IMG/VR virus record: IMGVR_UViG_3300032294_002797
Location: 62,001-126,000 of that record
Length of the DNA stretch: 64,000 nucleotides
Reading direction: 5' to 3' (one strand)
The notes below the pieces were generated by a model that worked only from the letters and a program-made list of their open reading frames with translations, was not told the DNA's origin and made no database searches. The position numbers were made by a program, and so were the translations under genes. Within the stretch, counting starts at the first letter, position 1; each line of letters begins with the position of its first letter. Positions 10,945 to 29,670 of this stretch are shown here, in pieces.

Positions 10945-10978
10945 TAATTAGTTACAGAGATTCAAAAGGAAGGACACG

Positions 10979-11128
10979 ATGGAAGAAATTTTTACTATAA
11001 TAGGTAAAATGTATGTAGATATTGTTCAGTCTCAAAAAGCTATTACAGAATTACAAAAACAACTAGATGATAAAGATAAAGAGATATCTAGTTTACAAAA
11101 TTCTATTATAGCTAAGCAGACAGAATAA
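10979..11128 (+). CDS. Small 49-aa coiled-coil protein (not in the ORF track)
   Basis: MEEIFTIIGKMYVDIVQSQKAITELQKQLDDKDKEISSLQNSIIAKQTE; AAGGAAGGA RBS; fills the gap; stop 1 nt before the next GTG. Confidence 0.75.
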   Translation: MEEIFTIIGKMYVDIVQSQKAITELQKQLDDKDKEISSLQNSIIAKQTE

Positions 11129-11129
11129 T

Positions 11130-12176: not shown

Positions 12177-12190
12177 TAAGGAATAATACT

Positions 12191-12499
12191 ATGACAGATA
12201 CTGAACGACTGATATTTCATCTTAAAAAAAGAGTAGAAACAACAATGATAGGAGCATTAAGCAAGTTTGAAAATACTTTTGGATTTTTGTGGGGGCAAGA
12301 TATTGAAAATGAAGATAACCTTACCTCGGAACAAATAGAATTTTCTGATATGTGGGAAAGAACTAGAAATCAGATTCTAAACCAAGGAAATGCTCAGATC
12401 AGAAATCTTGAAGATGATTTTTATAAGTATGGTGGATTTTTTAAGCAAAATTTCAATTATTCTTTTAGAGTACCAAAAGATAATACAAAAAATAATTAA
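12191..12499 (+). CDS. Hypothetical 102-aa protein, chaperone region
   Basis: Intact ORF with AAGGA RBS. Confidence 0.65.
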   Translation: MTDTERLIFHLKKRVETTMIGALSKFENTFGFLWGQDIENEDNLTSEQIEFSDMWERTRNQILNQGNAQIRNLEDDFYKYGGFFKQNFNYSFRVPKDNTKNN

Positions 12500-12522
12500 C
12501 ATAGAAGAAAGGACAGTATAAT

Positions 12523-13410
12523 ATGAAAACTGAGGATTTTAAAGTTGTGGTTGGTGAAGAGACGAAAACATTTATGGTGAGGTCGCCCTCTTTAACGGAT
12601 CAAAGAGAAGCTCAGAAAGTATATAATCATGCTTTTACAGACGCTATTAAAAGCAAGAGTGTTGTAAGAGCCAAAATGGATGATCTACTCGAAGAGCAAG
12701 GCTTATGGAACGAAGATAAGCAAAAAGAATACAATGATTTGCAAAAAGAATTATTAGAAGGCGAAAGAAAACTAGCCAAGGGCGGTTTTGCTCTTAGTGA
12801 AGCTAAAAAAATGGCCATTAAGATGAGAGAAGTACGAGGTAAGATTAGAGAATTAATTAGTGTTAGGACTTCCCTAGACAATCATAGTGCCGAAGGTCAA
12901 GCTGATAATGCTAGATTTAATTATTTGGTGAGTGTTTGTGTGGTGTATAAAGATAGTGATAAAAAGTATTTTGAGAGCCTGGAAGACTATATGGGTCGCA
13001 TAGATGATCCCGTAGCTCTTGCGGGAGCACAGAAATTGGCCAATATGATTTACGGTTTGGATAATGATTTTGAGAAGAATTTGCCCGAGAATAAGTTTTT
13101 ACGTAAATATAAATTTGTTAATGACAATTTAAGATTTATAGATAAGCAAGGTAGAACTGTAGATGGCGAAGGAAGATTAGTAGATGAAAATGGTAGGTAC
13201 ATTAATGACAACGGAGAGTTCATTGATAAAGATGGTAATAGAGTAGATGCAGATGGAGAGTACTTAGTTGATAGTCAGCCATTTTTGGATGACAACGGCA
13301 ATCCAGTAATTTTAGATGAGGAAACTAAAAAAAGTTTAGAAACCAAAGAACCTACCAATGAAGCAACTCCTGCAGCATCAGTATCAGAGGGAAATAAATC
13401 AACTACATAA
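12523..13410 (+). CDS. Putative tail assembly chaperone with 7-aa D-x-x-G repeats
   Basis: Directly upstream of the TMP; helical N-terminus; repeats IDKQGRT/VDGEGRL/VDENGRY/INDNGEF/IDKDGNR/VDADGEY. Confidence 0.55.
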   Translation: MKTEDFKVVVGEETKTFMVRSPSLTDQREAQKVYNHAFTDAIKSKSVVRAKMDDLLEEQGLWNEDKQKEYNDLQKELLEGERKLAKGGFALSEAKKMAIKMREVRGKIRELISVRTSLDNHSAEGQADNARFNYLVSVCVVYKDSDKKYFESLEDYMGRIDDPVALAGAQKLANMIYGLDNDFEKNLPENKFLRKYKFVNDNLRFIDKQGRTVDGEGRLVDENGRYINDNGEFIDKDGNRVDADGEYLVDSQPFLDDNGNPVILDEETKKSLETKEPTNEATPAASVSEGNKSTT

Positions 13411-13446
13411 TAGTTTATTGTTTTATTCTAGCTTTGTTTCATTAAC

Positions 13447-13481
13447 CAACGCCATGCTTTTTAGTGTGGCGTTGTTATTTT
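13447..13481 (+). terminator. Intrinsic terminator-like hairpin before the TMP
   Basis: caacgccatgc-ttttta-gtgtggcgttg: 11-bp stem (2 G-U pairs), followed by ttatttt. Confidence 0.6.
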
Positions 13482-13494
13482 ATGGGAGTAATTA

Positions 13495-16400
13495 ATGGCT
13501 AGAGGATTTAATCTTACAGCAGAAATCAATCTCAGAGGTCCGTCTAATATTAGGCAAATAACGTCTAATATTCGTAGACAGCTAGGTAATATCAATGCTA
13601 ATATCAATTTAAATATAGATAGAAATGCATCTAGAACAATTACTCAAGTCAATAATAATCTAAGAGTATTAACACAAACTTTAGGAGCTACGACAACAGC
13701 TGCGACAAATGCTACTACAGCATTTAATAATTTGGCGGCTGCGATGAGAGCGGTTGGAAATGTGAATTTGCCCGCAACCATCAGTACTCCTTTGGTTAGA
13801 ACAGCCGGCGCCGCCAATAACGCCAGCAGAGCCATTGCGCAAGCCAGAACAGAATTTGAGGATTTCGGTCGTCAAGCAGGACTAGCCGTACGACGTTTTG
13901 CTGCGTTCGCTTCTGTAACATCTGTTATTTACGGCGTTACAAACGCTCTGGCCAAAGGTGTTCAACAGTATATAGAATTTGATAGACAAATCGTTAGATT
14001 GTCACAAGTTACTAATGAAAGCAGAGAATCATTATCTGCTATGGTACAAGAGATAACAAAATTAGCTACAAATTTTGGCGTCTCATCATCGGATATTTCT
14101 CAGGTTGCTGTAACATTGGCGCAAGCTGGTTTAACAGCTAAAGATACGAGAATCGCGCTAGAAGCATTAGCTAAAAGTGCTTTGGCCCCATCTTTTGATA
14201 GCTTATCAGATACTGTAGAAGGCAGTATCGCGCTTATGAGACAGTTCGGCATTAGCGCTGGACAGCTAGAAAATGCTTTAGGTAGTGTAAATTCTGTTGC
14301 TGCGGCTTTTGCCGTAGAAGCCGGAGATATTATTACTGCTATACAAAGAACTGGTGGTGTATTTGCTGCTGCTAGTAAAGGTGTCAGTGAAGGCACAGAT
14401 GCGTTAAATGAATTTATTGCAGTATTTACTAGTGTTCGTGCGACTACTCGCGAAAGTGCTGAAACTATCGCCACTGGATTAAGAACTATTTTTACTCGTA
14501 TTCAAAGAGGAGATACAGTAGAAGCCTTAAAAGAATTCGGAGTTACTCTCACAGACTTAGAAGGTAAATTCGTTGGGCCCTACGAAGCTGTGCGCAGACT
14601 CAGCGAAGGATTAAGTAGACTAGATCCCAGAGATTTAAAATTTAGTAGCATAGTAGAAGAACTTGGTGGATTCAGACAAATCGGTAAAGTGCTTCCGTTA
14701 ATCCAACAGTTTTCCACCGCTCAAGAAGCTCTGAAAATTGCACAACAAGGTCAAGGCTCTCTTGCGATAGATGCGGCTAAAGGTCAGATGGCACTGGCGG
14801 TTCAAATACAAAAAGTAAGAGAAGAATTTAGTGCTTTAGTTAGATCTCTAGGAGATAGTAAGGGTTTTCAAACTTTAGTGAGACTTGGTTTGGATTTAGC
14901 CAGCGCACTAATTAAAGTAGCTGATGCAACTAAAGGTGTTTTGCCATTAATAGCTATTATGGGTGCTTTTAGAGGAGCTAGTGCCCTCACTCAATTTGCT
15001 GGTGGTTTTGGTGGAGGTTTTAGGGGTAATCGTCAACGAGCCAGAGACGGAGGTGTTATAGGTTTTGCTAGAGGAGGATTGGTTCCCGGCTCAGGAGATT
15101 CTGATAGCGTCAATGCTAGATTAACTCCTGGTGAGTTTGTAATGAGAAAGAGTGCGGTTAGAAGTATCGGTGCTGACAATTTAAGCAGCATGAATCGTGG
15201 AGGAGGTATAAAAAAATTACGAGAAGGAGGATATACTGTTAGAGAGCTTGCTGATAGTCAGAGAACTATCATAAATAACTATTTATATCCACGTAACAAA
15301 AACTCTAACTTAGAATTAAATGATAAAGTTAATGCTCAAATTATTAGAGTTAAAGAGAAACCGCTCACTGATGCAGAGATACGTGAGATCAAAGGTGCAT
15401 ATCCTACGTTAACTGGAAAATTAAAGACAAAAATAAAAGATCCTAAGAATAGAAAATTATTAGTAGAATCTCAGCGACCAACCTATCAAGGACCTGAATC
15501 AGATTCTATAGATGGTCTAGAGTATTCTCGTGCAGAAAAAGCCTGGGCTACTAAGTATGAGGAAATAATCAGGAAAAGACATAATCTTGAAGCAGCTAAT
15601 AAAGACAATCCCAATTATCCTGTAGACACCGTATCATCTCGTAACGTATGGGGGGAAGTAAAATTTAAAACTACCAAAGAACCAAAACGAGCTTTAATAG
15701 CTAAATTGTTGGCTAAAAAATTATTAGATAGATCAGTTAATAGGTTTTTTAAAGAAAATTCTTCGGACCAAGTTGACGGATCCATAGAAACAGACCCGCT
15801 TGGTCGTAATACTGTCAATCTAGGCAATCTTGAATACTATGGAGGAGATACAGGTCCTGGATTAGAATCTCATAAAAAGCAATTTTATAGGAAATTAAGA
15901 TCTGGAGGTATTGTTCAAAAATTTAAAGAAGGGGGTGAAACCCTTACTCTTGAAAAAGCAAGAGGCATGAGTAGAAAAGATATCCTAGATATTTTATCTG
16001 GCAGAAAAGGTGGCATAAGTACAACAGAAAGAGAAGTTGGAGTTAGTTCAGGTGAGATATACACAATACTAGGACAAAGAAATCCAGATGCAAAAACACA
16101 AGGACTTAAAGAAGCTATTCTTCAAAAAGCTGTTACAGCAAACAATAGGCAATTAGGAGCAGCAAAAGCTCAGATAACTAAATTACAGAATAATAATCTA
16201 GAAGTTGCCGCAGCAGGCTTATTTGGATCGAAATTTGCCGATCAAAATATGGATATCGAATCTCCGTCACTTTCTCAGTCCGCAAAGGTTAGAGTTATTA
16301 GCGGAATAATGGATAGTAAAATAGCTTCTTCTTTTAGCTCTATTGTATCAGAAACAACAGATAAATTAACCACGAGATTAGCAGAGGTAGCCACAACAGG

Positions 16401-19400
16401 CGATATACTAGCAAAACTTGGGCTAGGTAAAGAACTTAATACGGATTTTGACCGAACACTAGTTACTGGAGCCGACAAGATATTATCCGATCCAGGCAAA
16501 CCAGTGTTTTCGGAGTTTAGTGACCCAAATAAAGTATCTGCAGCATTACAGGGAGCAGAATTAACTTATCTTGGATCATCTTTAGTAGAGTTGATAAAAC
16601 AAAGAAAAGATTTATTACAATATATACGAGTGGTGACGGCTAGACCAGAATCGACTTTGGGTCTTATACAAGGATTTTTAGCCAGTAAAGATCTACCCAT
16701 ACCACGATCTCAATTTAAAGGCTTTGGTGGCGAAAATATTAGTGCAGATGAAATTGCCGAATTAAAGGCTGCATTTTTGAATCCAGATTCATTATTTGTT
16801 GATGATGATCCGCGTAATATAGCAGCAGCCAAAAAACGATCTAATGAAGGTATCACTAGTTATTTATACGGAACTGGCAAAAGTTTACCAAATTCGCAAG
16901 CACAGGGAGATATAGAGGGGTTATTACTAGAACAGGTTGTACAAAAACTTGGTGGTCCCGGAGCCCTCAAAGGCATGGGATTTGATTTTCCCAATGGGTT
17001 AGGCGATGCTGCTAAATATTTTGGACTACCTGATGATATACCCACAGATGTTAAGAGAACTATTAGTGGGCCATCCACAATCAAAGATAATATCGTTACA
17101 TATTTAAAGAACGTTATGGGCTATGCTGGTGGTGGGACTGTACCTGCTATGGTTAGTAATGGTGAAGCTTATGTTCCTCCAGCTATGGCTAAAAAAATTG
17201 GTTATGGGAAACTCCATAAAATGAATCAGGCTGATCGAAATGGGATGAATAGTTTTGCGAGTGGAGGGATGAGCATATTTAAAGGATCGGGCACTGGAAC
17301 CAGTGATAGTATTGGTCCTATAGGATTGCCTGTTGGCAGCTTTATCTTAAGAGAAAAAGCCACGAAGGCTTTGGGGTTGAATAGCGGAGGCAGGGTACAG
17401 AAATTCTTATTCGGAGGCAGAAGCAGAGGGCCAGCAGCAAGACCCGATGCTATTTCTGTAGATACAATAGGAGCGAGTAATACTGCTGTCAGATCTCTAG
17501 GAGACCTAGCTACAGTACTTAATGATTTAGGAGTTGCATCCTCTAGATCCTCTCAATTATTGAGTCGTGGATATCAGGCCACGGCAGCAGAAGCACAAAG
17601 AGCATATGAGGCCGATCTAGTTATGGCTCGCGCAGCCGGTGCTAGTGCAGATGTATTATACGATCTAGAACAAGCTTTAATTAGAACCAGACAAGAAGCA
17701 GAAGCAGAAGTAGCAGTAATGCAATCTTTAGCAAACATGAGTGGAGTAGAATTGCAAGATACTCTAAGCGACATGGAAGATGAATTAAGAAGATTGACGG
17801 ACGCCGCTAGGAATGCCGCGGCCGCTGCTGGACTAACCGGAGAGGAACTAGAAACAGAAGTTAGAGCAGGAGCTGGAGATCGTCGAAGACAAGCTTTCGA
17901 AACTGTTGCGGCCTCTGGAACTGGTCCACTTCGTGCCCTTGGTGGAGGAACTGGTTTAGATTTAGCTGCTATTGGCGCTACTGGAGATGATCTGGGTAGG
18001 GTTATTAATAATTTGATGAGAGACGCAGAAACTCTAGAACAGATGAATATGCGATATACTCAAAATCGCAGAGAAGAAGTAGCACAAGCCGCTATGGCTG
18101 CCGGTAATATAGCTAGAGCAGCTAGAATACGAGCTGGTAGTGAAAGAGATGTAGAAGAGACTATACAGAGAGAAATAAGAGCTAGAACAACAGCAGTAGA
18201 ACAAAATGCTAGAAGTACTGGAGCTAGGGGTCCAGATGAAGCTAGAGAATTTAATAGGCAAAATAATATGCTAGCTTCTTTTGCCGTTATGACCGTTGGG
18301 AATATTATTGCTGATACTATCAATGCTAAATCTAGCGCCACGGAAGCTGGTGTTGCTGGAGGTATCAGAGGAGGAACTCAGGCTTTTGCATATGCAAATC
18401 AGATTAGTGGAGAATTAACTAATTTTGCAGATGGTCTTAGTCGTACGGGGAATAGATTTGCTGGCCTAGCCAGTAATATTGCTAGATTTGCTGGAAGAGT
18501 TCAAATTTTTGCTGTGCTAGGAGAAGCAGCTATACAAGCATATAATGGGATTAGACAATTTGGTATAGAATTAGAAAAAAATAGAGTTGAGCAAGCTCTT
18601 AGTGGCCTTACCGAACAATTTGATAAGTTAAATAAAGATCTGAATCAGTTAGATCTTAGAAATGCTATTCAGTCAAATATTATAGATGCTAGCAGATCTT
18701 CGGAAAGACTAAGATCACAAACATTAGATACGGCCTCCGCTGGATGGATCAATGGTATAGATGTTTTCATATCATCTCTACAAAATAGTGAAACCAATAA
18801 TACCAATAGGAGGGCTGCTTTAAGATCACAAGTATTGGAAAAAGAAGGTATTATGGAATATATCAACACTAGTTTTGGAGGTGCTGATACTTATGCTGCC
18901 AAAGCAGCAAAATATAGTGGACAGCAAGCTCTAGAATCTAGTCAATCCTTTAAGCCAGTAGCTGATAATATTAATCAATTAATTTCTGCCCGTATTAGAG
19001 GAGGAGAAAATATTGGAGATATTCTTGGCGGACCGGAATTTAAAGATTTTGCTACATCCTTAGTTTATGCTGATAGTGCTTTAAATAAGCATATTCGTGA
19101 GATAGAATTATCTACTAGATATACAGAAGAAGAGAAAAAAGCTCGTATAGATGAGATTATTAGTATACAAGGAGCTAATAAAATTCGTACGCAGGCCGCA
19201 ATTGCCCAGAGAGAAAAAGATCAAAGAGAATTAGGCACAGTAGCTTCTGTATATACAAGATCATTAAAGAGAATGTTTACTAATATGGAACAGGCTATAA
19301 ATGCTGCTGCATATTCATTAAAACAAATGACGGACAATATAGATTTAAATGTTAGCGCCCTACAAGGACAAGCCAAAGTAGGTTCAGTTGATTTACAAAC

Positions 19401-22400
19401 ATCTAATATTATACAAAATCCACGAGCCTATAATCCCGGAGTAAGATCATCTGCTCAGGCATCTGCCTCTTCGTTATTTGGTACAAGAGCACCAGAAATG
19501 GCGCAGCTTATGAATCTTGGAGAAACAGTAGAAAATACTGTTATGTCTACTATCAATAAAACATTAGAAGACAAAGGTCCAGATGCCTCTAATGAAGCTA
19601 TAGCCAGAGCTGTAGATAAAAGCGTACGAGACGAACTCAGTGGATTAGGATTACCTCCGGAGCTAGCGGATAAATTAGCTAAAGAAGTTGGTGATACATT
19701 AGTAGATTTAAGAAAATCTGGCGACGAAAAAGTTGATTTTGCCAAGCTTTCCGAAAAACTAGGATCGTTGTCTAGCGTTATAGATACAGCAAAAGATGCA
19801 CAGCAAGCAGCTATCAAAGCTTTAGAGAATTATCAGAATGTTTTGAATGCTTATGCTAATAATATTAATCGTATTATTGACCTGGAAACCAGTGCTAGAG
19901 ATAAATTTAATAAATCTGTCAATATCGCTGCTGATGGTAGTACCGCTTTATCTAAAGCTCTTGGCAGAACCATCACTGTCGCAGATGCTTTTGCTAAAAG
20001 AGATGCTTCTATTGCTAGACAAACAGGTGGTCTAACTGATCCAACGGATATCTTTAATAAGATCTTAAGTCTGAATAATAATAGAGATATTTTACAATCA
20101 TCTAGTAGAGAAGCGGCTGATAAAGGTCCTGCTGGTATTCAAGATTTTATCAAATTTAATAGCGAACTTAAGAATACTAATATTGCTTTAAGAGAAAATA
20201 GAGCTGCTTTAGAGGATATGGCTACTAATACAGAAAAAGCAAGCTCAGCTATGGATGCTATACAAGAAGCTCAACAAAAAGCAGCTGGTAGAATTGGCTT
20301 CTTAGAAAAAGTAGTTACCAGTACTCCTGATGAATTAGATTCGTTAAATCAATCTTTGTATAGACTGCAAAGAAATATGAATGGTCAACAAAATACTATT
20401 CAGAATAGCATAGGTGCTCAAAAGGCATATAGGGATGCATTAAATCAGGGAGCTTCTGCTGCTGAAGCTATGAGAGCTGCTCAAACAGCTTTTGCCAACG
20501 AAAGAAAGGAAACCCTAGGTACTCTTCAAGATATTATGCCATTTTTAGGAGACAATCAACAAGCAAATAATATTAAAGCAAATGTTCTAGAGACAATGTT
20601 AGCCGAGTCCGGCATGGGAGTTTCTCCGCTATTCCAACAGATACTCAATACTCTACGAAATCCCGAACAAGATCCCGCCACAGCTGCTGCTATACAATAT
20701 TATAATCAGTCAATAGCGGAACAGTCAACAGCTACTAGATTATTAGGACAATTAGATCAACAACTAGCCAATGATATAGCAGTACAAAATAGTAAACTAA
20801 TAGTAGACGGCTTAACTAAAACAGTATTAACTTTCCAGAATAATGAGCTTAGAGATATAGCAGACAAAGTCAATACAATGGTTTCTATTATGCAGAAAGC
20901 TCCTGGCGCTGGAGGTTTAGCTAGCGGAGGCATGGTTTATGCTGCTGGTGGTCAATTTATCAATTTTCAACCAAAAGGTACAGATACTGTTCCTGCAATG
21001 CTAACACCGGGAGAGTTTGTTGTCAATAGAGCCGCTACTCAAGCGAATCTTCCGTTATTAAAATCTATTAATAATGGATATTCCAGAGGAGGTAAAGTAT
21101 CTTATTATGCTGCTGGTGGTTTTGTTACCAATTGGGGCAGTCAAACTAGTATGGATGAATTTGGCATGATGAGTGATAAAGAGATTATTGATCCTAGTGT
21201 AGAAGCTAATAGAGCCATTTGGAGTGCTGGATACAAGCAGAATATTAGATTATTACCTAGTTATTATACTTTAGATTTTTCTGATGATAATACTACGATC
21301 CCATCACCGGGAGCAGACCCCGATAGTCCTAACTTTAACTTAGATCAAATTAAACCAACAAGTGGTAAAGTTAGAGTTGGCTCAGCAGTTGGTATTTCCA
21401 GGGTTGGAGATGATCAGTATGCATATATAGACAACCAAGGTGCTATCGACGCTAGTAGCGATATGCCTATTATCAAGGCTGCTGAGACAAATTTATATTT
21501 GGGTTTAGACAAGTTCAAATCAACAAATTTTGCTCAGTCCAAGGCTACAGAATACAAAGATCGATTTCGATCATTTGAAGCATTAGACTCTACTCTTCAT
21601 AAATCTATAAGTATGGATCCTATTGCTTTTGCTGATGATCTTCCAAAATTAAGTGATTTTACTTCTAATGCTAATGAATGGAATCCTACACTAGCTGGTA
21701 AATCATACGGTATAGCGTTTGATACTTCTACAGAGATTAGACCAACTGATAAAGATGTGTCTGCTGCGCCTTCTTTTAAAATTTGGTACTATAAAAGATC
21801 CCCATTGAATTATGCGGGCTGGGCTCCAGGACTAGCGATGGGAGTTTCTGTAAAGCAGCCAAATTTCGATATTGGCACTCCATATTCCTCAAATGATGGA
21901 TTCGATAGCAAAAGCTGGGTCGTTTTCGGATCTGGTAAGTATAAATCCGCTATGTATCCTGACTTAGAAAAAATGAATGGTGTTATTACCGGCAAAGGAA
22001 TAAAAGACGCTAATACTATTAGTTCAGAGAACTATGAGCTATATAAAAATACAGTAGATTTTTTAAGTGGAGCTTCCACATATAAGGATACCGGCGGCCT
22101 TGGTGCAGCTTTACAACAAAAATTATCTAGTTTATATAATGGTCTAGCACAATTTATAACTCTTGATCAAAATGAAATAGCCCCCTTAGATGAGCTAGTC
22201 AAATTGAATGCTACTAGCGCAATTATTGCACAACAATCTTTAGAGCAACAATTTAAAGATGGCCTTCAGTTTATAGATACTAATGCTGCTAAATATAATA
22301 AAGTAAAAATAGGATTGACTGGTGCCAAACCCGCCATCAAAAATCCAGATTTCTTAGCCTCTAAGCCTTTTGATATAGAAAATACAGCAACAAAAATATC

Positions 22401-25400
22401 CAAGTCTTTTCCGTTCATGATAAATGGAAATATGCGTGAGATTCTAGGTAAAGATTTTGAGGATGTCGCTGCTCAACAAGCTGCTGCTACTAAAGGCAAA
22501 GTACATAGCAGATTACTACCGGTTGACGAATTAAAGGTCAATTTACCAGTGAATATACAGGGTAAACAACCTCAATTATCTATACCAATAGCTTATGAAG
22601 AATATACCGGAGAACTATTTGATCCATCAACTAAGAATTTTGATGGTAAGCCTTTTACCACTTTGTTGCCTAATAATATTTCAGAAACTCTTTTTCAAAA
22701 TTTGGACGAATCACGAAAAAGATTATTTACAACTAAAAAATATACAGTACCAGATATTTTAAAAGCATCGAAACTAGATGATCCTACTAATCCGATTTTT
22801 ACTGATATAATAGACTTATTCAAGTTTCAAACTAATAATGATCCTAATGTAGATGCACAGGCTAAAAAAGTAGCAGCAAATCTTAATTTAGTATTCGATC
22901 ATCCTCAAAATTCTTTAATTAAAAATGTAGGCTTAGCTGGAGACGGCGGGGTAGATGTGTTCTCTGCTATGAGCGATGAGCCCACCACAGTTAATGTAGG
23001 AGAATTTTTACTCAAAAAATTCCAAGAGTTTAGAGGCCAGCTAGCTTCTGGAGCAAATAAAGTAGATCCAATTATGCCGAAAGGCGCTGTATTTTCTGAT
23101 GCTGAACTTCCTCAAGCAACTGCCGCACTGATTCGTGGATCGATGGCATTATTTGGGGGCCTAAAATTACCGGGTGCTCCTTATGGATGGCTTTCTAAAT
23201 CTGGTGGTCCTCAAGCTCTCAGAGCTGCTATATCAGGTAACCCCGTAGCAGCAGCGCAGCATATGGCAGGAGTATTAAATCAAGCAGGAGCTTATGTCTC
23301 GCAATTACAAAATAGGGCTCCTAATGTATCAGCTTATAATGCTCTAGATAATGCTATGACTATGATTAGTGGAGCAGCTAATGCTTTTGGTTCCTTAGCT
23401 GGTGGGGATACTAGTCTGTTAAAGCAGTTTTATGAGAATAAGGTGCCTATCGCCGCAGTATTTCGTAGTTTAGGAGCTGCGTCTAGATTTGGTAAAATAT
23501 CGGGTATGAAATTGAGTCCGGATTGGCAAAATATATTAGGTAATCAGCTTCAGGGATCCAAATTGAAAACTGTTGGACGAGATGGTTCATTATCAGACGC
23601 CACGTTAGTTAGTGCGATACCAGAAAACGCCACTGTTTCTGATTTAGTCAAAGTAATTTTTAATCCATATAATGAATTTGCTGGTAAAGATATACGAAAA
23701 GGTCTTATTCAAAAATTTGGTGATGATATATTCAATCTGAGAGGACCAAATCGCATGCCGTATTTTGATCCTCAAACCTTATCTTTTATTAGAACGGGAC
23801 TTTATCGTTTGATGGATTGGTATGGAGGAAAAGGAAATTGGGTAGGACAAGACTATTTCTTTGATGAGAAAAACGAACCAGATAATGCTCTTCGTATGGC
23901 TAATTTTGCTCAATCTTTAAAAACAGATGGGTCTCAATTCTATAAAGACGCTATGGAAGCCCATACTCTATTTGGTTTGTCTAATGCTTTTGGAGCTTTA
24001 CCAACAGATCAATGGTTTATGTCTCGTGGCGCTGTATTGCCACAAAAGAAGGCGGCTGGCGGAGTTATCTATGCTCAAACGGGTGGAAACTTAGTCAACT
24101 TTAAACCCCAGGGCACTGATACAGTTCCCGCGATGTTAACCCCAGGAGAATTTGTTGTTAATAGACGAGCAACACAAAAAAATCTACCACTACTACGATC
24201 CTTGAATAGTGGTGGATCTACAGGATATAGTCAAGGAGGGGTGGTTTATTTAAGCGGCGGAAGTGCCGACCCTGTTGTAGACGTTACCGGCAATGGTGTT
24301 GGAAACATATCGCCAAAAGTTATTCAACAAGCATTGATTACAGGGATTAGAAATGACCAATTATTAGCCGGTAATGCATCTAGAGAAGATACTTTGGACA
24401 TGACGGTGAGAGATTATACTAGACGAACGGTTTTCAAGGACCATCTTTTAAATCTTGGTGTTACTCCAGAACAGCTTAAAATAGCAGAAGATGATCTACG
24501 AGAAAGATCGGAAACCGGCGTAGACTTACCGGCAGGTGATATGTATGATAGACAAATTGCGGGTACTTTAATTAGACAAGGAATATCACAAGATATTATT
24601 GATAAAGCTAAAAAAGCTAATTATGAAGCACAAAATAAGACATTTCGTATACAAAAAGATTTGTTTGATAAGAAAAAAATGGCATTAGCAAGATCTAATG
24701 TTTTTGGTGTTGAATATTTTATGGGAAACTTAAGCATTTTTGATGCATCTCGTGGGGCACGTAAAGATAAAAAACTATTAGAAGAGCGTTTTAAATTAAC
24801 AGATATGACCAAAGATAATACTGTTAATGTACTAGATTTATTAACATGGTTATCTAGAAATCCAGATGTTCAATCGGCTGCTAATCCATATATCAGCTCA
24901 TCCGATGCCTGGATGCCCAAAGGCTTTTTATCTGGTAGTGGCGGTGTATTTTCTGATACTACTCGTAAACAAGACGAAAGAGCCGAAATAGAACCGCATA
25001 TTCGTACTCTCTCTCCTCAACTTGATACATGGGCGAATGTTCTCAGGTATAGACTAGATTCTGCCCGACAAGCCCAAGATCTAAGAGATGCAGAAGCTAA
25101 ATTAGCACAAAATCAAACAAAGGAAAAACAAGGGGTTGAAGCTTGGGGTAGCGGTGGAGCCGGAGGGATAGATCCATCTGAAATTAATACGCTAAGAGCC
25201 AAACAAAAAGAATGGGGACAGAAAAGATTACAGTATATGGAAAGACTAAATACTTTAGAAGGTCTTATTTCTTTAAGAGCTATCGGCGGTACAGGAGTGG
25301 GGTCTTTGGAGGAACTTGTCGCCAATGAACAAGGTATGTCTACAAGTATTAGAGATAATGAACAATTAGGTTTGAGAGAAGATATTATAGATGAAGGCAA

Positions 25401-28400
25401 TAGAGAAGGTTTGCGTAAAGGAGCGAGAAATTTAGTCATGACAGCAGCAATAGGCGCTGCTTCACCATTTTTATTGCCCGCTGGAATAGCAGCTGCTGGA
25501 GGAGCAGCGGTATTAACTATCGGAGGTTCGCTTGGAGCAATGTATTTGGCTGATGCTGTTGAAGAAAAGAATTATCAAAATCTAAAAAATACCGATCCTA
25601 AAGAATTTGCTCGTCAACAGTTATTAAGAAGTCAAAATTCGTATCAGGAAGCTGCTGCTTCTATGGAAAATATTGTAGACATTGCTGATATGGCTTTGGG
25701 TATTGGCGCCGGCGCTGTAAACACAAAGGGATTATTTAAATATAGATTTTTTCAAGAAGCTGCAGACGGTCAGCCTGTCAAGATAAAAAATACTGCTGTT
25801 AGTCGTTCAGCAGAAGCTAAGGACATAGCAGATAAAAGTAAAGCAGCTCTCAAAGACATGTCCGATGATGCAAAAGCTAAACCAAAAACAGCTGATGATG
25901 TTAAAACTGATACTGAAGCTAAAGCAAAAACGAAAACCGAGCAACCGGCAACACCAGAAAAACCCATTAAATTTAAGAGTCCAAAAGTAGCAGAAGCCTG
26001 GAATAATGCCGTAGCCGAAGCTAGAGCCAAATATAATAAGTCTATAAATGAATTTTCAGACCAACAGATGAAAGATTATTTTGAGACCGGACCAGGCTCA
26101 GCTGCTAAACAACAAGTTAATGCTCAAATAGAACAATTGAAACTTGATGCTGGTGCGACAAAGATGAACGATGCTGATGCTTGGAATACCATAGCAACAC
26201 AGTATCCCGATAGATTTGGACAATTTGCAGATGATCTGAAGAAAAATGGATATATGATAGATGATGATGGAAATATTATATTTGGTCCTAATGCTAGAGG
26301 TATTGTAGATTCTGATCCCAATATGGCCGGGGCTTTTGAAAATGCTCGTACAAAAGCTAGACAACAGGGTATAGACGAGGCCGCTGATAAATTAAAAATT
26401 AAAAAAGGTAGTAAAGATTATGATGATTTAGTAAAAGCATATGATGATGATATTAGTATTAAAGGAAGAACATGGAGAGGATATGTCAAAGATAAATGGG
26501 CTGCTGTCACTAAGTCCAAATGGGCAAGATTAGCAGCGGGTGGTGCCGCATTACTGGCTGCATGGCAGGCTTGGATGATGCTTAATGCAAATAAACAAAA
26601 TCAAAAACCCCCAGGAGGTGCTCCAACAATTCCACCAGCTCCTGGTACTGGAGGTTCTGGTGGTGGTGGCGGCGGCGGTAGCGGTGGAGGTAACACACCA
26701 ACTGTTCCCCCTCTGGAGCCCACTGTTGTCGATCCTGCTGGTAAAACTGTTAAAAAGATAGAAACTCCTAATTATTATGATGAATTAACATATAAAGAAT
26801 ATGTAAGTAGACAACTAGTGGCCGGTCATGCTCCACCAGAGCCGATCAAAAAGTTATTTACTACGGCCGCTGTTTATGGCTATCAGACAGATGCTACAGG
26901 CAAGAGAATTAGAGGTAGTAATAGAAGAACCACAGCATATGATCAAAGAGATACTAGTGGCTTAAATAAAGGTATTGGTTTAGAAGGAGATGAAACCGGC
27001 GGCGCTATGCGCGCTAAAAGTCCTGTTGGAGGCAGAACTGTTTCGTCTCAAACCCACACTACTACCGCTCCATTTGTCCCTAGTTCTACAACATATGATG
27101 GAAAGGGCGGGTTTAATTATAAGCCAGGCGGTGCTCCTCAAGATACTAGAAATTTATCAGAAGAAGATAAAGCTAGAATAAAAAAACAAGGAGGATTCTT
27201 ACCATCCGGCCAGTTCGGTACTGACCAAAATAATAAAGAAGGTAATGCGGGTATACGTCAATCTGCGGGGGCCGCACCAGCAATACCATTTGGTGTTCGA
27301 CCCGTGCCTCCAGAAAAAAAACAGGGAGCCGCAGATGAATTTGTAGAGTCTGCAAGTAGTACAGACGTTGCTAAACAAATGGAAATAGCAAATCGACCAA
27401 TGAGTGTTCGCGGAAAAACAGTTATGTGGGGTAGAACAAGCCCTCTTACTCAATATAAAACAGCTTATGCATTCTGGAGACGTAAACTAGGAGAATATAA
27501 TTATTTTAATAGTATAGCTTATCAAAAGAAAGATAGATGGAAAAAAGGATTTGGTAAATATGATAGTGTCTTAAAACAAGAAAAAGAAGCACAAGGATTG
27601 TCTAGGGGTGGTGTGGTATATGCTCAAAATGGCATGCTTATTCCTTATCAACCTAGGGGTACTGATACTGTTCCGGCTATGTTAACGCCGGGTGAATTTG
27701 TGGTTAATAGAGCCGCCACACAAAAACACTTGCCTTTATTAAAAACTCTCAACCGTAGCAAAGGCGGAACTGTTTCATATTTATCAGCCGGAGGACAATC
27801 TGCTCCCGCGGCTCCTCCTTTGTTTGTATCAGACAAGAATGCTGCAAAACTCAGTAATGTTGGTAAAGATGTAAAAAATGTAGAGATTCTTGGCAAGGAT
27901 ATCAAATCATTATTAATTAATAATCCTGTTCCTAAAAAATTAGATGAATCAACAGGTAAAATTTTAGATTGTTGTAAAGATAGTCAAAATAAAAACCAAA
28001 AAAATGCAGAAAATATTTTAACGCTACAACTACAAAATAGAACTAATATGGGTATTAGTACAAAACTCATTATGGGCGCCATAGAATATACTGGAATGAA
28101 AGCCGAGGCCGCGATAGCCAAAGCTTCAGTTGAAAAACCAGCTTGGGTAGACGAGGAAGTTAATAGCATACAATCAAAAATAATTGTAATGATTAGTCAG
28201 AGCATAGACTCGGCGAAACAATCAGTAACCGACACCATTGGGGCGGCCAAAGATGCTCTTGCGGGTATGCTCGGAGGCGCCGCTGCACCTGCTGGTGCTG
28301 TTCCTGGTCCCGCTGCGGCCGGTGCCGCCGCTGCTCCTGCGGCGGGAGCCGCTGGTTTGTACAACGGAGGTATGGTATATGCTAGTAATGGAACTCTTAT

Positions 28401-29670
28401 AAATTATCAACCAAGAGGCACAGATACCGTACCAGCAATGTTGACTCCTGGAGAATTTGTAGTTAATGCTAGAGCAACAAAAAAACATTTACCTCTATTG
28501 AGTGCTATTAATGATGGAAATTATAAAGCTGATGGTGGTATTATCACACCGAGTTATTATGCGAACGGGGGTCACAACCCAGATCATAAGCAATGGGCTG
28601 AAGCGAGACAAAGACACGAAGAACGTCAAGAACAAACTCAAATATTAAGCGGATATAAAAAATTTGGAAATAGAGCGCCATTATTTTTTGAAATAGATAA
28701 TCAGATAAAGCAAGCTCGTAATCTGTTTGATGCACTTGATGCAAACGCTATTAACGAAGATCTAACTAAAGATCAAGTTATAACTATGGTTGAAGATAAA
28801 ATAGCAAAAGCATCGTCCGATCAAAAGGCTGCTCTCATAAATGCAGAAAGAGCAACGGCTCAACAACGCTTTCAGTATTTATTAGGTGTCGTTCAAAGAT
28901 CTTCTGTAGCTATACAATCTCTAACAGGTAATGCTAGAAATTATGAGTCGGTACAAAATCCTGGATTTACTTACTATGATATTCTAGATGCTCAAATAAA
29001 GCATGGCCAGGCAGAAGGAAAAGCGCTATACGAAGGATGGTTAGAATTAAATAAAGAAGTGGGCTCAGTATCTTTACCGGGCTCAACAGCGGTAGGTTTA
29101 CCAGCACCAGGAGCAGGAGGAGCGAATCCGCCTGTTGGTAAACAGTACGGAGGATTAATTTATGCTAATAATGGCATGTTAATTCCTTATCAGCCCAAAG
29201 GAACTGATACTGTGCCTGCTATGCTCACTCCTGGTGAATTTGTAGTTAATAGAAATGCTACCAGGAATAATCTTGCTTTATTACAAGATATTAATAGTAA
29301 TAGATTTAATAATGGTGGTCCTGTAGTATATAAGCAAGCGGGCGGTCCTATTATGTATAGGCAATATGGCGGAATGACGGATGAATCTGGCGGAGGCACT
29401 AGTGGTGTATCTAATAGTGGCGGACCTGATTTTGATAAATTAGCCCAATTTACCGCCACCTTTGATAGATTTATTGGCCAATTACAAAAACTTAATATTC
29501 CACCACAAATTAATTTAACTCTAACACAACAGAAGCCATTGGAGATTAATGTTAACGGAGCAGAAGCACTACAAAAACTATTGGAAGGTCCATTAGGAGA
29601 TATTGTAAGAGGAAATGTCAATACAGCACTTAATCAAAATCGCGTAGGTAACGAAGAACCACCACAATAA
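13495..29670 (+). CDS. Giant modular tail tape-measure protein (5391 aa) with repeat-bounded cargo domains
   Basis: N-terminal TMP core (FDRQIVRLSQVT..ATNFGVSSSDISQVAVTLAQAG..); long Ala-rich helices; canonical position; eight copies of a GTDTVPAMLTPGEFVVN-type module; embedded HAD and PD-(D/E)xK-like motifs. Confidence 0.9.
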   Translation: MARGFNLTAEINLRGPSNIRQITSNIRRQLGNINANINLNIDRNASRTITQVNNNLRVLTQTLGATTTAATNATTAFNNLAAAMRAVGNVNLPATISTPLVRTAGAANNASRAIAQARTEFEDFGRQAGLAVRRFAAFASVTSVIYGVTNALAKGVQQYIEFDRQIVRLSQVTNESRESLSAMVQEITKLATNFGVSSSDISQVAVTLAQAGLTAKDTRIALEALAKSALAPSFDSLSDTVEGSIALMRQFGISAGQLENALGSVNSVAAAFAVEAGDIITAIQRTGGVFAAASKGVSEGTDALNEFIAVFTSVRATTRESAETIATGLRTIFTRIQRGDTVEALKEFGVTLTDLEGKFVGPYEAVRRLSEGLSRLDPRDLKFSSIVEELGGFRQIGKVLPLIQQFSTAQEALKIAQQGQGSLAIDAAKGQMALAVQIQKVREEFSALVRSLGDSKGFQTLVRLGLDLASALIKVADATKGVLPLIAIMGAFRGASALTQFAGGFGGGFRGNRQRARDGGVIGFARGGLVPGSGDSDSVNARLTPGEFVMRKSAVRSIGADNLSSMNRGGGIKKLREGGYTVRELADSQRTIINNYLYPRNKNSNLELNDKVNAQIIRVKEKPLTDAEIREIKGAYPTLTGKLKTKIKDPKNRKLLVESQRPTYQGPESDSIDGLEYSRAEKAWATKYEEIIRKRHNLEAANKDNPNYPVDTVSSRNVWGEVKFKTTKEPKRALIAKLLAKKLLDRSVNRFFKENSSDQVDGSIETDPLGRNTVNLGNLEYYGGDTGPGLESHKKQFYRKLRSGGIVQKFKEGGETLTLEKARGMSRKDILDILSGRKGGISTTEREVGVSSGEIYTILGQRNPDAKTQGLKEAILQKAVTANNRQLGAAKAQITKLQNNNLEVAAAGLFGSKFADQNMDIESPSLSQSAKVRVISGIMDSKIASSFSSIVSETTDKLTTRLAEVATTGDILAKLGLGKELNTDFDRTLVTGADKILSDPGKPVFSEFSDPNKVSAALQGAELTYLGSSLVELIKQRKDLLQYIRVVTARPESTLGLIQGFLASKDLPIPRSQFKGFGGENISADEIAELKAAFLNPDSLFVDDDPRNIAAAKKRSNEGITSYLYGTGKSLPNSQAQGDIEGLLLEQVVQKLGGPGALKGMGFDFPNGLGDAAKYFGLPDDIPTDVKRTISGPSTIKDNIVTYLKNVMGYAGGGTVPAMVSNGEAYVPPAMAKKIGYGKLHKMNQADRNGMNSFASGGMSIFKGSGTGTSDSIGPIGLPVGSFILREKATKALGLNSGGRVQKFLFGGRSRGPAARPDAISVDTIGASNTAVRSLGDLATVLNDLGVASSRSSQLLSRGYQATAAEAQRAYEADLVMARAAGASADVLYDLEQALIRTRQEAEAEVAVMQSLANMSGVELQDTLSDMEDELRRLTDAARNAAAAAGLTGEELETEVRAGAGDRRRQAFETVAASGTGPLRALGGGTGLDLAAIGATGDDLGRVINNLMRDAETLEQMNMRYTQNRREEVAQAAMAAGNIARAARIRAGSERDVEETIQREIRARTTAVEQNARSTGARGPDEAREFNRQNNMLASFAVMTVGNIIADTINAKSSATEAGVAGGIRGGTQAFAYANQISGELTNFADGLSRTGNRFAGLASNIARFAGRVQIFAVLGEAAIQAYNGIRQFGIELEKNRVEQALSGLTEQFDKLNKDLNQLDLRNAIQSNIIDASRSSERLRSQTLDTASAGWINGIDVFISSLQNSETNNTNRRAALRSQVLEKEGIMEYINTSFGGADTYAAKAAKYSGQQALESSQSFKPVADNINQLISARIRGGENIGDILGGPEFKDFATSLVYADSALNKHIREIELSTRYTEEEKKARIDEIISIQGANKIRTQAAIAQREKDQRELGTVASVYTRSLKRMFTNMEQAINAAAYSLKQMTDNIDLNVSALQGQAKVGSVDLQTSNIIQNPRAYNPGVRSSAQASASSLFGTRAPEMAQLMNLGETVENTVMSTINKTLEDKGPDASNEAIARAVDKSVRDELSGLGLPPELADKLAKEVGDTLVDLRKSGDEKVDFAKLSEKLGSLSSVIDTAKDAQQAAIKALENYQNVLNAYANNINRIIDLETSARDKFNKSVNIAADGSTALSKALGRTITVADAFAKRDASIARQTGGLTDPTDIFNKILSLNNNRDILQSSSREAADKGPAGIQDFIKFNSELKNTNIALRENRAALEDMATNTEKASSAMDAIQEAQQKAAGRIGFLEKVVTSTPDELDSLNQSLYRLQRNMNGQQNTIQNSIGAQKAYRDALNQGASAAEAMRAAQTAFANERKETLGTLQDIMPFLGDNQQANNIKANVLETMLAESGMGVSPLFQQILNTLRNPEQDPATAAAIQYYNQSIAEQSTATRLLGQLDQQLANDIAVQNSKLIVDGLTKTVLTFQNNELRDIADKVNTMVSIMQKAPGAGGLASGGMVYAAGGQFINFQPKGTDTVPAMLTPGEFVVNRAATQANLPLLKSINNGYSRGGKVSYYAAGGFVTNWGSQTSMDEFGMMSDKEIIDPSVEANRAIWSAGYKQNIRLLPSYYTLDFSDDNTTIPSPGADPDSPNFNLDQIKPTSGKVRVGSAVGISRVGDDQYAYIDNQGAIDASSDMPIIKAAETNLYLGLDKFKSTNFAQSKATEYKDRFRSFEALDSTLHKSISMDPIAFADDLPKLSDFTSNANEWNPTLAGKSYGIAFDTSTEIRPTDKDVSAAPSFKIWYYKRSPLNYAGWAPGLAMGVSVKQPNFDIGTPYSSNDGFDSKSWVVFGSGKYKSAMYPDLEKMNGVITGKGIKDANTISSENYELYKNTVDFLSGASTYKDTGGLGAALQQKLSSLYNGLAQFITLDQNEIAPLDELVKLNATSAIIAQQSLEQQFKDGLQFIDTNAAKYNKVKIGLTGAKPAIKNPDFLASKPFDIENTATKISKSFPFMINGNMREILGKDFEDVAAQQAAATKGKVHSRLLPVDELKVNLPVNIQGKQPQLSIPIAYEEYTGELFDPSTKNFDGKPFTTLLPNNISETLFQNLDESRKRLFTTKKYTVPDILKASKLDDPTNPIFTDIIDLFKFQTNNDPNVDAQAKKVAANLNLVFDHPQNSLIKNVGLAGDGGVDVFSAMSDEPTTVNVGEFLLKKFQEFRGQLASGANKVDPIMPKGAVFSDAELPQATAALIRGSMALFGGLKLPGAPYGWLSKSGGPQALRAAISGNPVAAAQHMAGVLNQAGAYVSQLQNRAPNVSAYNALDNAMTMISGAANAFGSLAGGDTSLLKQFYENKVPIAAVFRSLGAASRFGKISGMKLSPDWQNILGNQLQGSKLKTVGRDGSLSDATLVSAIPENATVSDLVKVIFNPYNEFAGKDIRKGLIQKFGDDIFNLRGPNRMPYFDPQTLSFIRTGLYRLMDWYGGKGNWVGQDYFFDEKNEPDNALRMANFAQSLKTDGSQFYKDAMEAHTLFGLSNAFGALPTDQWFMSRGAVLPQKKAAGGVIYAQTGGNLVNFKPQGTDTVPAMLTPGEFVVNRRATQKNLPLLRSLNSGGSTGYSQGGVVYLSGGSADPVVDVTGNGVGNISPKVIQQALITGIRNDQLLAGNASREDTLDMTVRDYTRRTVFKDHLLNLGVTPEQLKIAEDDLRERSETGVDLPAGDMYDRQIAGTLIRQGISQDIIDKAKKANYEAQNKTFRIQKDLFDKKKMALARSNVFGVEYFMGNLSIFDASRGARKDKKLLEERFKLTDMTKDNTVNVLDLLTWLSRNPDVQSAANPYISSSDAWMPKGFLSGSGGVFSDTTRKQDERAEIEPHIRTLSPQLDTWANVLRYRLDSARQAQDLRDAEAKLAQNQTKEKQGVEAWGSGGAGGIDPSEINTLRAKQKEWGQKRLQYMERLNTLEGLISLRAIGGTGVGSLEELVANEQGMSTSIRDNEQLGLREDIIDEGNREGLRKGARNLVMTAAIGAASPFLLPAGIAAAGGAAVLTIGGSLGAMYLADAVEEKNYQNLKNTDPKEFARQQLLRSQNSYQEAAASMENIVDIADMALGIGAGAVNTKGLFKYRFFQEAADGQPVKIKNTAVSRSAEAKDIADKSKAALKDMSDDAKAKPKTADDVKTDTEAKAKTKTEQPATPEKPIKFKSPKVAEAWNNAVAEARAKYNKSINEFSDQQMKDYFETGPGSAAKQQVNAQIEQLKLDAGATKMNDADAWNTIATQYPDRFGQFADDLKKNGYMIDDDGNIIFGPNARGIVDSDPNMAGAFENARTKARQQGIDEAADKLKIKKGSKDYDDLVKAYDDDISIKGRTWRGYVKDKWAAVTKSKWARLAAGGAALLAAWQAWMMLNANKQNQKPPGGAPTIPPAPGTGGSGGGGGGGSGGGNTPTVPPLEPTVVDPAGKTVKKIETPNYYDELTYKEYVSRQLVAGHAPPEPIKKLFTTAAVYGYQTDATGKRIRGSNRRTTAYDQRDTSGLNKGIGLEGDETGGAMRAKSPVGGRTVSSQTHTTTAPFVPSSTTYDGKGGFNYKPGGAPQDTRNLSEEDKARIKKQGGFLPSGQFGTDQNNKEGNAGIRQSAGAAPAIPFGVRPVPPEKKQGAADEFVESASSTDVAKQMEIANRPMSVRGKTVMWGRTSPLTQYKTAYAFWRRKLGEYNYFNSIAYQKKDRWKKGFGKYDSVLKQEKEAQGLSRGGVVYAQNGMLIPYQPRGTDTVPAMLTPGEFVVNRAATQKHLPLLKTLNRSKGGTVSYLSAGGQSAPAAPPLFVSDKNAAKLSNVGKDVKNVEILGKDIKSLLINNPVPKKLDESTGKILDCCKDSQNKNQKNAENILTLQLQNRTNMGISTKLIMGAIEYTGMKAEAAIAKASVEKPAWVDEEVNSIQSKIIVMISQSIDSAKQSVTDTIGAAKDALAGMLGGAAAPAGAVPGPAAAGAAAAPAAGAAGLYNGGMVYASNGTLINYQPRGTDTVPAMLTPGEFVVNARATKKHLPLLSAINDGNYKADGGIITPSYYANGGHNPDHKQWAEARQRHEERQEQTQILSGYKKFGNRAPLFFEIDNQIKQARNLFDALDANAINEDLTKDQVITMVEDKIAKASSDQKAALINAERATAQQRFQYLLGVVQRSSVAIQSLTGNARNYESVQNPGFTYYDILDAQIKHGQAEGKALYEGWLELNKEVGSVSLPGSTAVGLPAPGAGGANPPVGKQYGGLIYANNGMLIPYQPKGTDTVPAMLTPGEFVVNRNATRNNLALLQDINSNRFNNGGPVVYKQAGGPIMYRQYGGMTDESGGGTSGVSNSGGPDFDKLAQFTATFDRFIGQLQKLNIPPQINLTLTQQKPLEINVNGAEALQKLLEGPLGDIVRGNVNTALNQNRVGNEEPPQ
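15088..29250 (+). repeat. Dispersed in-frame module repeats in the TMP
   Basis: Exact GTDTVPAMLTPGEFVVN at 20977, 24112, 27658, 28417 and 29200; degenerate copies at ~15088, ~17137 and ~17281. Confidence 0.95.

Follow-up and report, generated by a model that had tools for sequence, protein, structure and literature searches.

The DNA considered here (the window) is a stretch of 64,000 nucleotides, positions 62,001 to 126,000 of the IMG/VR virus record IMGVR_UViG_3300032294_002797, which is a 223,302-bp record of an uncultured phage rated complete by CheckV. Within the window, an uninterrupted open reading frame (ORF) of 5,391 codons encodes a giant protein in which a first-pass annotation, made from the sequence, had recognized a complete phosphatase domain of the HAD type; we investigated this domain and the protein that carries it. 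By its sequence, the carrier is a tail tape-measure protein (TMP). It matches PF10145 (PhageMin_Tail) over residues 186-379 with an E-value of 5e-23 and 82.5 bits against a cut-off of 33.2, its N-terminus matches the TMP family phrog_28 (1.3e-28), and the PHROG TMP families that it matches, eleven in number, cover residues 25-520. Distant tblastn matches to this core region were annotated TMPs of SPbeta-like and Rhodococcus phages. The surrounding gene order is plausible for a tail block, with ORFs of 348, 102 and 295 residues upstream of the TMP, ORFs of 1,488, 1,775 and 2,772 residues downstream, and tail-fibre-like proteins further upstream; the immediate neighbours gave no family match in Pfam or PHROG. 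On this sequence evidence, the earlier placement of the domain inside a TMP was correct.

All four HAD motifs (DFDRTL, VVTAR, a lysine and FVDDD) fall in order within this ORF, as read from the ORF list and its translation, and the positions and frame originally assigned to them proved exact (Table 1). In a very long protein, short motifs of this kind could occur by chance. The pattern DxDx[TV] was seen twice in the 5,391 residues, against 2.3 occurrences expected for this size and composition, and a loose form of the ordered four-motif pattern appeared in 6.8% of 500 shuffles. The pattern in the single sequence is therefore not significant by itself. We judge the domain to be real because of its conservation among relatives and its predicted structure: conservation over 112 modules, a confident HAD-fold model and HAD structural neighbours together rule out a chance origin, to which we assign a negligible likelihood.

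Table 1. Features of the TMP gene, in window coordinates; P0040 is a related TMP
Feature	Residues	Position	Strand	Basis
Giant tail TMP, single ORF		13495..29670	+	PF10145 PhageMin_Tail, phrog_28, homologs
TMP core region	~25-520	13567..15054	+	PHROG TMP families, PF10145, tblastn
Module M1, PD-(D/E)xK-like signature, candidate nuclease fold	~675-790	15517..15864	+	Motif in ~18 homologous segments
Module M2, upstream flank of HAD	800-965	15892..16389	+	Aligns in 58 homologs
Predicted HAD phosphatase cassette	966-1126 (161 aa)	16390..16872	+	AlphaFold2, structure searches, 112-module conservation, absence from P0040
HAD motif I, DFDRTL	984-989	16444..16461	+	Conservation; follows model strand 1
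HAD motif II, VVTARP (T1048 at 16636, then A1049-R1050)		16630..16647	+	Conservation; ends model strand 2
HAD motif III, K1091	1091	16765..16767	+	K in 110/112 modules; weak hhalign alignment to AphA
HAD motif IV, FVDDD (D1103 at 16801, D1104), then N1108		16795..16809	+	Conservation; ends model strand 4
Module M4, 3' of HAD	~1133-1218 (~85 aa)	16891..17148	+	65-80% identity in TMPs without HAD
Near-identical ~45-aa repeat copies		~20990-21130, ~24125-24265, ~27670-27810, ~28430-28570, ~29210-29350	+	phrog_35029, phrog_25241
Degenerate ~45-aa repeat copies		near 15090-15170, 17140-17230		

Conservation, predicted fold and cassette behaviour of the HAD domain

Conservation was counted over 112 homologous modules aligned to a profile. 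In motif I, D984 and D986 are each kept in 100% of the modules, and T988 and L989 in 98%. Motif II has threonine or serine at position 1048 in every module (112/112, 100%), A1049 and R1050 in 100%, and the following proline in 95%. The lysine of motif III, K1091, is present in 98% (110/112), and motif IV, which takes the form DDxxxN, retains D1103 in 99%, D1104 in 100% and N1108 in 85%. Ten residues past the nucleophile, position 994 is conserved as Asp or Glu across the family. The catalytic residues stay at 98-100% while overall identity among the modules falls to ~30%, a constancy that would be unexpected if the module were a non-catalytic, purely structural HAD fold that might plug the tail lumen, act there as a spacer or provide an assembly checkpoint. 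TMPs are primarily structural, and the adjoining M2 and M4 are conserved modules in which no enzyme signature can be recognised, which would suit such a role; given the catalytic residues, and given relatives that drop the module and keep its flanks, we consider it very unlikely.

The fold was predicted with AlphaFold2 for residues 966-1142 from a 27-sequence alignment. The model has a mean predicted local distance difference test (pLDDT) score of 88.5 and a predicted template-modelling (pTM) score of 0.82. It consists, in order, of strand 1, a short helical insert, strand 2, a helix, strand 3, a helix, strand 4, a helix and strand 5, which form a Rossmann-like three-layer fold of five parallel strands resembling solved HAD enzymes. 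Motif I begins where strand 1 ends: the model strand (16-18) stops just before D19, which is D984. Motif II closes strand 2 (model residues 79-83), which terminates on T1048; K1091 sits on the helix that precedes strand 4 (119-129); and strand 4 (135-138) terminates on D1103.

Structure searches with this model pointed to HAD enzymes throughout. Foldseek against the PDB, Swiss-Prot models and viral models returned HAD phosphatases with probability 1.00 and E-values of 1e-4 to 1e-6, the Swiss-Prot matches being led by HisB-N and class B acid phosphatases. A wide search independent of Foldseek, over 48,161 representative chains, gave HAD enzymes in 49 of the 50 top rows. Its first three entries were phosphatase domains of polynucleotide kinase/phosphatase (PNKP) enzymes (11.0, 10.3 and 10.1), followed by class C acid phosphatases and other HADs, and a second-look ranking of the structural matches agreed. 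The closest structural neighbour of the domain was thus a PNKP phosphatase domain. Feature neighbours in the ESM Atlas scored 0.92-0.93 with 170-180 shared features; all were viral and carried HAD_SAK_1, T5 dNMPase, DUF2608 or Acid_phosphat_B. Shape and feature searches of the Atlas led to viral HAD clusters including HAD_PNKP, NT5C, DUF2608, HAD_SAK_1, T5 dNMPase and Acid_phosphat_B, and comparison with viral Atlas and BFVD models gave template-modelling (TM) scores of 0.6-0.68. Residues 966-1126 very probably form a genuine HAD fold with an intact catalytic set. The claim of a complete HAD-type phosphatase domain in the TMP was therefore upheld by the conservation over 112 modules, the model with its pLDDT of 88.5 and the PF10145 core of the carrier.

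Homologs of the module were sought with a word-indexed search, which found 59 proteins, and an exhaustive HMMER search, which found 98; most are 2,000-7,900 residues long, and 55 of the 59 word-search homologs carry a precomputed PF10145 match. In this search the module was located only in giant TMPs (~1,900-7,900 residues) or fragments of them, all from uncultured viruses, and it occurs on 46 IMG/VR contigs of up to 238 kb. Neither tblastn of the module nor megablast of the gene matched any of 50,697 GenBank phage records, and a pattern scan of 185,579 GTDB species-representative prokaryote genomes found no relative. Among the homologs found, none was clearly a stand-alone gene. Two candidates for a free-standing HAD protein were set aside: P0130 (162 residues) belongs to a TMP whose reading frame continues through in-frame stops, so that its phage probably uses a recoded stop codon, and P0128 (810 residues) nearly fills its 4.5-kb contig and is probably a fragment. 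A related TMP fragment at L005:1-2223 (ENA contig k141_746934) stays in frame across two stop codons, at …SRAA*RIQM… and …KKAA*VMEG…, so that this phage probably reads one stop codon as sense.

Comparison of relatives defined the borders of the HAD module. In P0040, both flanks align (residues 796-965 at 45% identity and 1127-1216 at 71%), and only 6 residues stand between them in place of the 161-residue HAD segment. Several TMPs, P0040-P0054, have the downstream module M4 and lack the HAD domain. In P0070 the HAD module is duplicated, and in P0059 HAD and M4 occur in reversed order. Judged from these alignments, the HAD domain behaves as a discrete 161-residue cassette that is accessory and mobile.

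Proposed activity, substrate and family placement

We propose that the cassette may be an active Mg-dependent phosphomonoesterase that is ejected with the TMP at infection and acts on a nucleic-acid end or a nucleotide, a chain of steps that as a whole has about an even chance of being right. The parts differ in strength. From the sequence and the model, the cassette is quite likely an active phosphatase, and by analogy with other TMPs its delivery at infection is reasonably probable; that nucleic-acid 3'-phosphate ends are the specific substrate is a doubtful proposition. By analogy with characterised HAD phosphatases, D984 would attack the substrate phosphate to form an aspartyl-phosphate intermediate, D986 would serve as the general acid/base, T1048 and K1091 would hold the phosphate, and D1103 and D1104 would bind Mg2+. 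R1050 would occupy the position of an essential arginine in T4 Pnkp (VVSGR) and AphA (VTGR). Since the cap insert is only small, the active site should be fairly open, which fits a bulky or polymer-ending substrate.

Because the HAD domain is part of the TMP, it would be present in few copies per virion, stored in the tail lumen and expelled at infection. At 1.5 Å per residue, a tail matched to all 5,391 residues in extended form would be ~0.8 µm long. In T5, the tail lumen holds the TMP as a trimer whose C-terminus lies in the tip; receptor binding leads to its expulsion, and the enzyme domain that it carries may have to refold (PMC10038345). During injection the lambda TMP operates at the inner membrane (bioRxiv 10.1101/2025.11.03.685801). 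The cassette lies in the head-proximal fifth of its TMP (residue ~1,000 of 5,391) and so would leave the tube late, just ahead of the leading DNA end, after which it would act at or inside the inner membrane. The weakest step is the substrate, which would be a phosphomonoester on a nucleic-acid end or a nucleotide; for example, 3'-phosphates that block extension or ligation might be removed. Both the PNKP-like structure and the small size of the cap speak for a nucleotide or a 3'-phosphate nucleic-acid end. In keeping with this proposal, the phage genome encodes an enzyme of the RNA-ligase family (PF09414, 70 bits). Its gene, with a KLDG nucleotidyl-transferase motif (~70 bits), lies outside the window at the very end of the linear record (G000:C1:222621-223133, minus strand; locus L054:1471-2181). 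As the ORF continues past that end, the record probably either has a circularly permuted sequence or lacks a small part.

A number of results weigh against this proposal, and many of them concern the family assignment. The profile search suggested in the first-pass annotation found no curated HAD model at cut-off: the window sequence had no match (Pfam and PHROGs on the window segment alone gave no HAD match), and 63 family members had sub-threshold matches only. These sub-threshold hidden Markov model (HMM) matches concentrate on HAD families, namely TIGR01509 (18/63 members, best E 6.8e-4), TIGR01681 (8/63), the lipin-type LNS2 model LNS2_PITM1-3 (7/63, E ~0.01, the most frequent Pfam match of this kind), DUF2608 (5/63), and PF00702 and PF12710 (4/63 each, the best for PF00702 at E 0.0034). 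PF03767, PF26880 and PF06941 reached cut-off in no family member. PF25109 (HAD_PNKP) matched neither the window sequence nor the 63 members at E <= 1, and matched nowhere in the 223-kb genome. Profile searches of PDB sequences with the 27- and 63-sequence alignments remained at noise level (E ~1, with AphA at E 1.8). In hhalign comparisons, where the templates were single T4 PseT and AphA sequences and hence too thin for the purpose, PseT gave no alignment and AphA a weak one (probability 13%, E 0.0022 for one pair). The latter pairs T1048 and R1050 with the T-G-R of AphA, K1091 with the lysine of its 'NTK' stretch, which we take to be the catalytic K152, and D1104 with the first aspartate of GDSDND. 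No polynucleotide kinase was detected in the protein or the genome. A single P-loop match to PF13671 (13.8 bits) was rejected as the partner kinase, as Pfam identifies that ORF as RuvB; a RuvB homolog lies in the phage genome at G000:C1:189656-190561. With an RNA-ligase-family gene and no detectable polynucleotide kinase, a complete T4-style repair set is not evident. At the structural level, the lead of PNKP over acid phosphatases amounts to only ~1 Z unit, and the convergence of the catalytic residues on one site in the model is read from secondary structure and alignment only. The acidic D994 of the cassette stands ten residues after its nucleophile, and in T4 Pnkp R176 stands eleven after its own. 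As for delivery, three globular domains of 150 residues would be a tight fit in a tail lumen of ~4 nm, so that storage in unfolded form may be required, and few enzyme copies would reach each cell.

The first-pass annotation had likened the motif layout to that of phage polynucleotide 3'-phosphatases, and we compared the cassette with the 3'-phosphatase domains of T4 Pnkp (PseT; PDB 5uj0, 1ltq) and of Pnkp1 from the bacterial Pnkp1/Rnl/Hen1 complex (4xrp). Like these enzymes, it has a DxDxT motif I (DFDRTL, against FDVDGTL in T4 Pnkp), an [ST]-x-R motif II (VVTAR against VVSGR), a DD-type motif IV (VDDD against IDDR) and a cap that is small or absent. The spacings differ. Motifs I and II are 64 residues apart in the cassette, ~18 more than the 46 of T4 Pnkp (AphA has 68), and the distance from the lysine to the aspartate, motif III to IV, is 12 residues in the cassette, 19 in T4 Pnkp and 15 in AphA. 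R176 and R213 are essential arginines of T4 Pnkp. The invariant R1050 of the cassette matches the position of R213 by motif, and the conserved acidic D994 near the place of R176 argues against an identical substrate grip. Unlike PNKP, the cassette has no HAD_PNKP HMM match and no fused or nearby 5'-kinase, and it sits in a virion structural protein, whereas PNKP is a soluble early enzyme. Membership of the PNKP family thus lacks support from PF25109, which finds no match, and from a partner kinase, which was found in neither the protein nor the genome. We read the cassette, from its model, as a separate HAD family that has no existing model and whose nearest structural relatives are PNKP-type and acid-phosphatase-type small-cap enzymes.

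The acid-phosphatase likeness bears on a different reading, in which the cassette would be a mononucleotide phosphatase comparable, as a 5'- or 3'-nucleotidase, to T5 Dmp, AphA or the class C enzymes, and would work at entry on free nucleotides rather than polymer ends, either in the periplasm or in the cytoplasm. The Swiss-Prot Foldseek matches are headed by HisB-N and class B acid phosphatases, the Atlas neighbours include Phage_T5_dNMPase, Acid_phosphat_B and NT5C clusters, and AphA gave the sole meaningful pairwise hhalign alignment. The motif I to II spacing is nearer to that of AphA than to that of T4 Pnkp, and the conserved acidic D994 just past motif I has a parallel in deoxynucleotidases, which also carry an acidic residue there. 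Like the class B and C acid phosphatases (AphA; e(P4)), the cassette has T-x-R after strand 2 (motif II of AphA is VTGR), and the weak hhalign alignment (13%) sets its T1048, R1050, K1091 and D1104 on the corresponding T-G-R, lysine and aspartate of AphA. Motif IV, however, is of the DD type (DDxxxN) in the cassette and GDxxxD (GDSDND) in AphA, and the cassette has neither the signal peptide or lipoprotein context of these enzymes nor a match at cut-off to PF03767, PF26880 or PF06941. Moreover, the handful of enzyme molecules reaching an infected cell cannot shift bulk nucleotide pools, and we regard the nucleotidase reading as unlikely. The nearest language-model neighbours of the cassette are free-standing phage HADs, namely T5 dNMPase (PF26880), HAD_SAK_1 (PF10307) and DUF2608 (PF11019). 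These are stand-alone proteins of 150-220 residues, whereas the cassette was found only inside giant TMPs or their fragments, and no member of its family reaches cut-off with their HMMs. Healing of 3'-phosphate ends stays our leading guess and is weakly favoured over the nucleotidase role; either role, as first suggested for this domain, is one that we infer.

Neighbouring modules and possible cargo of the giant TMPs

The regions on either side of the HAD cassette were examined for further modules. M1 shows the pattern E...N-Y-P-V-D...G-E-V-K-F, a classic signature of PD-(D/E)xK nucleases, which is kept in ~18 homologous TMP segments. Residues ~575-798, which include M1, are swapped for unrelated sequence in the relatives P0001 and P0002, both of which are 100% identical to the window protein in the HAD region. 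Pfam and the ESM Atlas gave no support for the PD-(D/E)xK reading of M1, and it remains an unconfirmed candidate nuclease-fold module based on its motif. M2, the upstream flank, is 45% identical in P0040, which is without the HAD cassette. Its first part (SRKDILDIL...ISTTEREVGVSSGEIYTILG) resembles a helix-turn-helix, after which comes a conserved AAG.FG...VR..SG motif, and from this sequence a part in DNA binding is possible. M4, on the downstream side, has the pattern 'EG..hE..LG..hDFP.GLG.AA.YFG..hPT[DE]hKRT'. Its conservation (65-80% identity) and the breadth of its distribution both exceed those of HAD, and it is present in HAD-less TMPs. A first guess that M4 is a PD-(D/E)xK nuclease was unsupported: its AlphaFold2 model was poor (pLDDT 57.7), and there was no Pfam or Atlas match.

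A further enzyme domain was found in a relative. P0055, a TMP of 4,114 residues (locus L006, gene 8001-20345), carries an ADP-ribosyltransferase exoenzyme domain (PF03496) at residues 1303-1513, directly after its HAD and M4 modules, with 26.8 bits against a cut-off of 23.4. This arrangement supports a zone of enzyme cargo. From the sequence comparisons, the N-proximal region that follows the TMP core looks like a zone of exchangeable modules, some of them enzymes. In other relatives, precomputed matches to EF-hand (PF13202) or cytidylyltransferase-associated (PF16581) families were also observed.

The nature of this cargo and the position of the cassette bear on whether the phosphatase might instead act on the envelope, stripping phosphates from the core or lipid A of lipopolysaccharide, from phosphatidate or from undecaprenyl phosphate in the periplasm and so aiding the channel. 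Previously known TMP enzyme domains all act on the envelope (PMC6116005, PMC10038345), lipin-type LNS2 is the commonest sub-threshold Pfam match (7/63), and the structural matches include small-cap HADs of the HisB-N-like group, of which the heptose-bisphosphate phosphatase GmhB is a member. The LNS2 matches, at E ~0.01, nevertheless fall below cut-off, and the cassette, being in the head-proximal fifth, is a long way from the C-terminus, the part of the protein that leaves first. In addition, the neighbouring cargo in P0055 is an ADP-ribosyltransferase, and T4 Alt, a virion-borne ADP-ribosyltransferase, acts in the cytoplasm. Taken together, an envelope target appears rather improbable.

The same zone could be thought to serve host takeover or anti-defence, with the phosphatase directed at a target of low copy number, for example a host phosphoprotein or an immune signal bearing a phosphomonoester, for which few molecules would suffice. 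Counter-defence genes are usually accessory and mobile, like the cassette; in P0055 the ADP-ribosyltransferase occupies the same zone, and injection-stage defences contact TMPs (bioRxiv 10.1101/2025.11.03.685801). The sequence, however, names no specific target, matches to PADLOC-type or anti-defence families were neither sought nor found, and the closest structures are enzymes of nucleic acids and nucleotides; we consider such a role distinctly improbable. A broader and tentative reading, which we also hold to be doubtful, treats the giant TMPs of this lineage, which is one of uncultured jumbo phages, as modular effector carriers whose N-proximal cassettes (the HAD phosphatase, the PD-(D/E)xK-like module and, in the relative, the ADP-ribosyltransferase) would be threaded into the cytoplasm just ahead of the DNA. 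The HAD domain would then hit a low-copy target, for example 3'-phosphates that block the ends of the entering genome, or a phosphomonoester involved in defence, and among phages the TMP would correspond to the shafts that secretion and injection systems load with effectors.

Other parts of the TMP and of the tail block were also inspected. A repeat unit of ~45 residues, 'GG.VYA..G.LI.YQP.GTDTVPAMLTPGEFVVNR.AT..LPLL..IN', occurs in the TMP in five near-identical and two degenerate copies (Table 1) and matches phrog_35029 and phrog_25241. The repeats are reminiscent of the GE[FY]V motif found C-terminally in ordinary TMPs, and give the impression of a chain of several TMP units. On the 3' side of the TMP, positions 29683-50927 of the window hold the three very large ORFs (1,488, 1,775 and 2,772 residues) and two ORFs of 526 residues. 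The sole family match in this interval is a sub-threshold one of the 1,488-residue ORF to the beta-roll family PF21300 (24.1 bits against a cut-off of 30). Directly 5' of the TMP, none of seven ORFs (7730-13410) gave a Pfam or PHROG family match. By these sequence searches, the tail module of this 223-kb phage is essentially unannotatable with current libraries.

Relation to known systems and significance

The enzyme domains known from TMPs are peptidoglycan hydrolases according to the literature (PMC6116005, PMC10038345), and the first-pass annotation had said as much of most of them. They include the metallopeptidase of T5 pb2, the Rpf-like motif of mycobacteriophage TM4 and the muramidase of a staphylococcal phage. 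As in the cassette-bearing TMP, the enzyme domain in these proteins is built in, and there it is kept in the tail lumen until its expulsion at infection (PMC6116005, PMC10038345). The T5 enzyme domain lies at the C-terminal end and exits first, whereas the protein that holds the HAD cassette is four to five times longer and has it in its N-proximal fifth. The Alt ADP-ribosyltransferase of T4 is alike in concept, being a particle-borne enzyme that is injected with or ahead of the DNA; it differs in being, according to the T4 annotation, a separate head protein, and it has no HAD domain. Sle1-type proteins of an actinobacterial injection system are TMP-related carriers with exchangeable functional domains (PMC13277306). 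Unlike the cassette-bearing TMP, Sle1 belongs to a bacterial injection system rather than a phage, and it has no HAD domain. In full-text literature searches, HAD or phosphatase domains and TMPs were mentioned together only incidentally. Both the enzyme fold and the carrier principle are thus familiar, and we found no description of their combination or of this family.

The significance of the HAD cassette lies in the kind of cargo that it represents. As far as found, the enzymes built into TMPs all cut peptidoglycan, and the cassette would extend that range. As the HAD family falls outside the Pfam and NCBIfam models, such domains currently go unannotated. The occurrence of a conserved phosphatase, predicted to be active, and of a neighbouring ADP-ribosyltransferase in a relative suggests that the TMPs of some phages carry non-envelope enzymes as well, and nucleic acids, nucleotides or host proteins are suggested as their targets at genome entry. 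If this is true, the list of virion-delivered effectors grows, the cassette points to repair or counter-defence at the stage of injection, and cargo of this kind would help to explain why these TMPs reach lengths of 4,000-7,800 residues.

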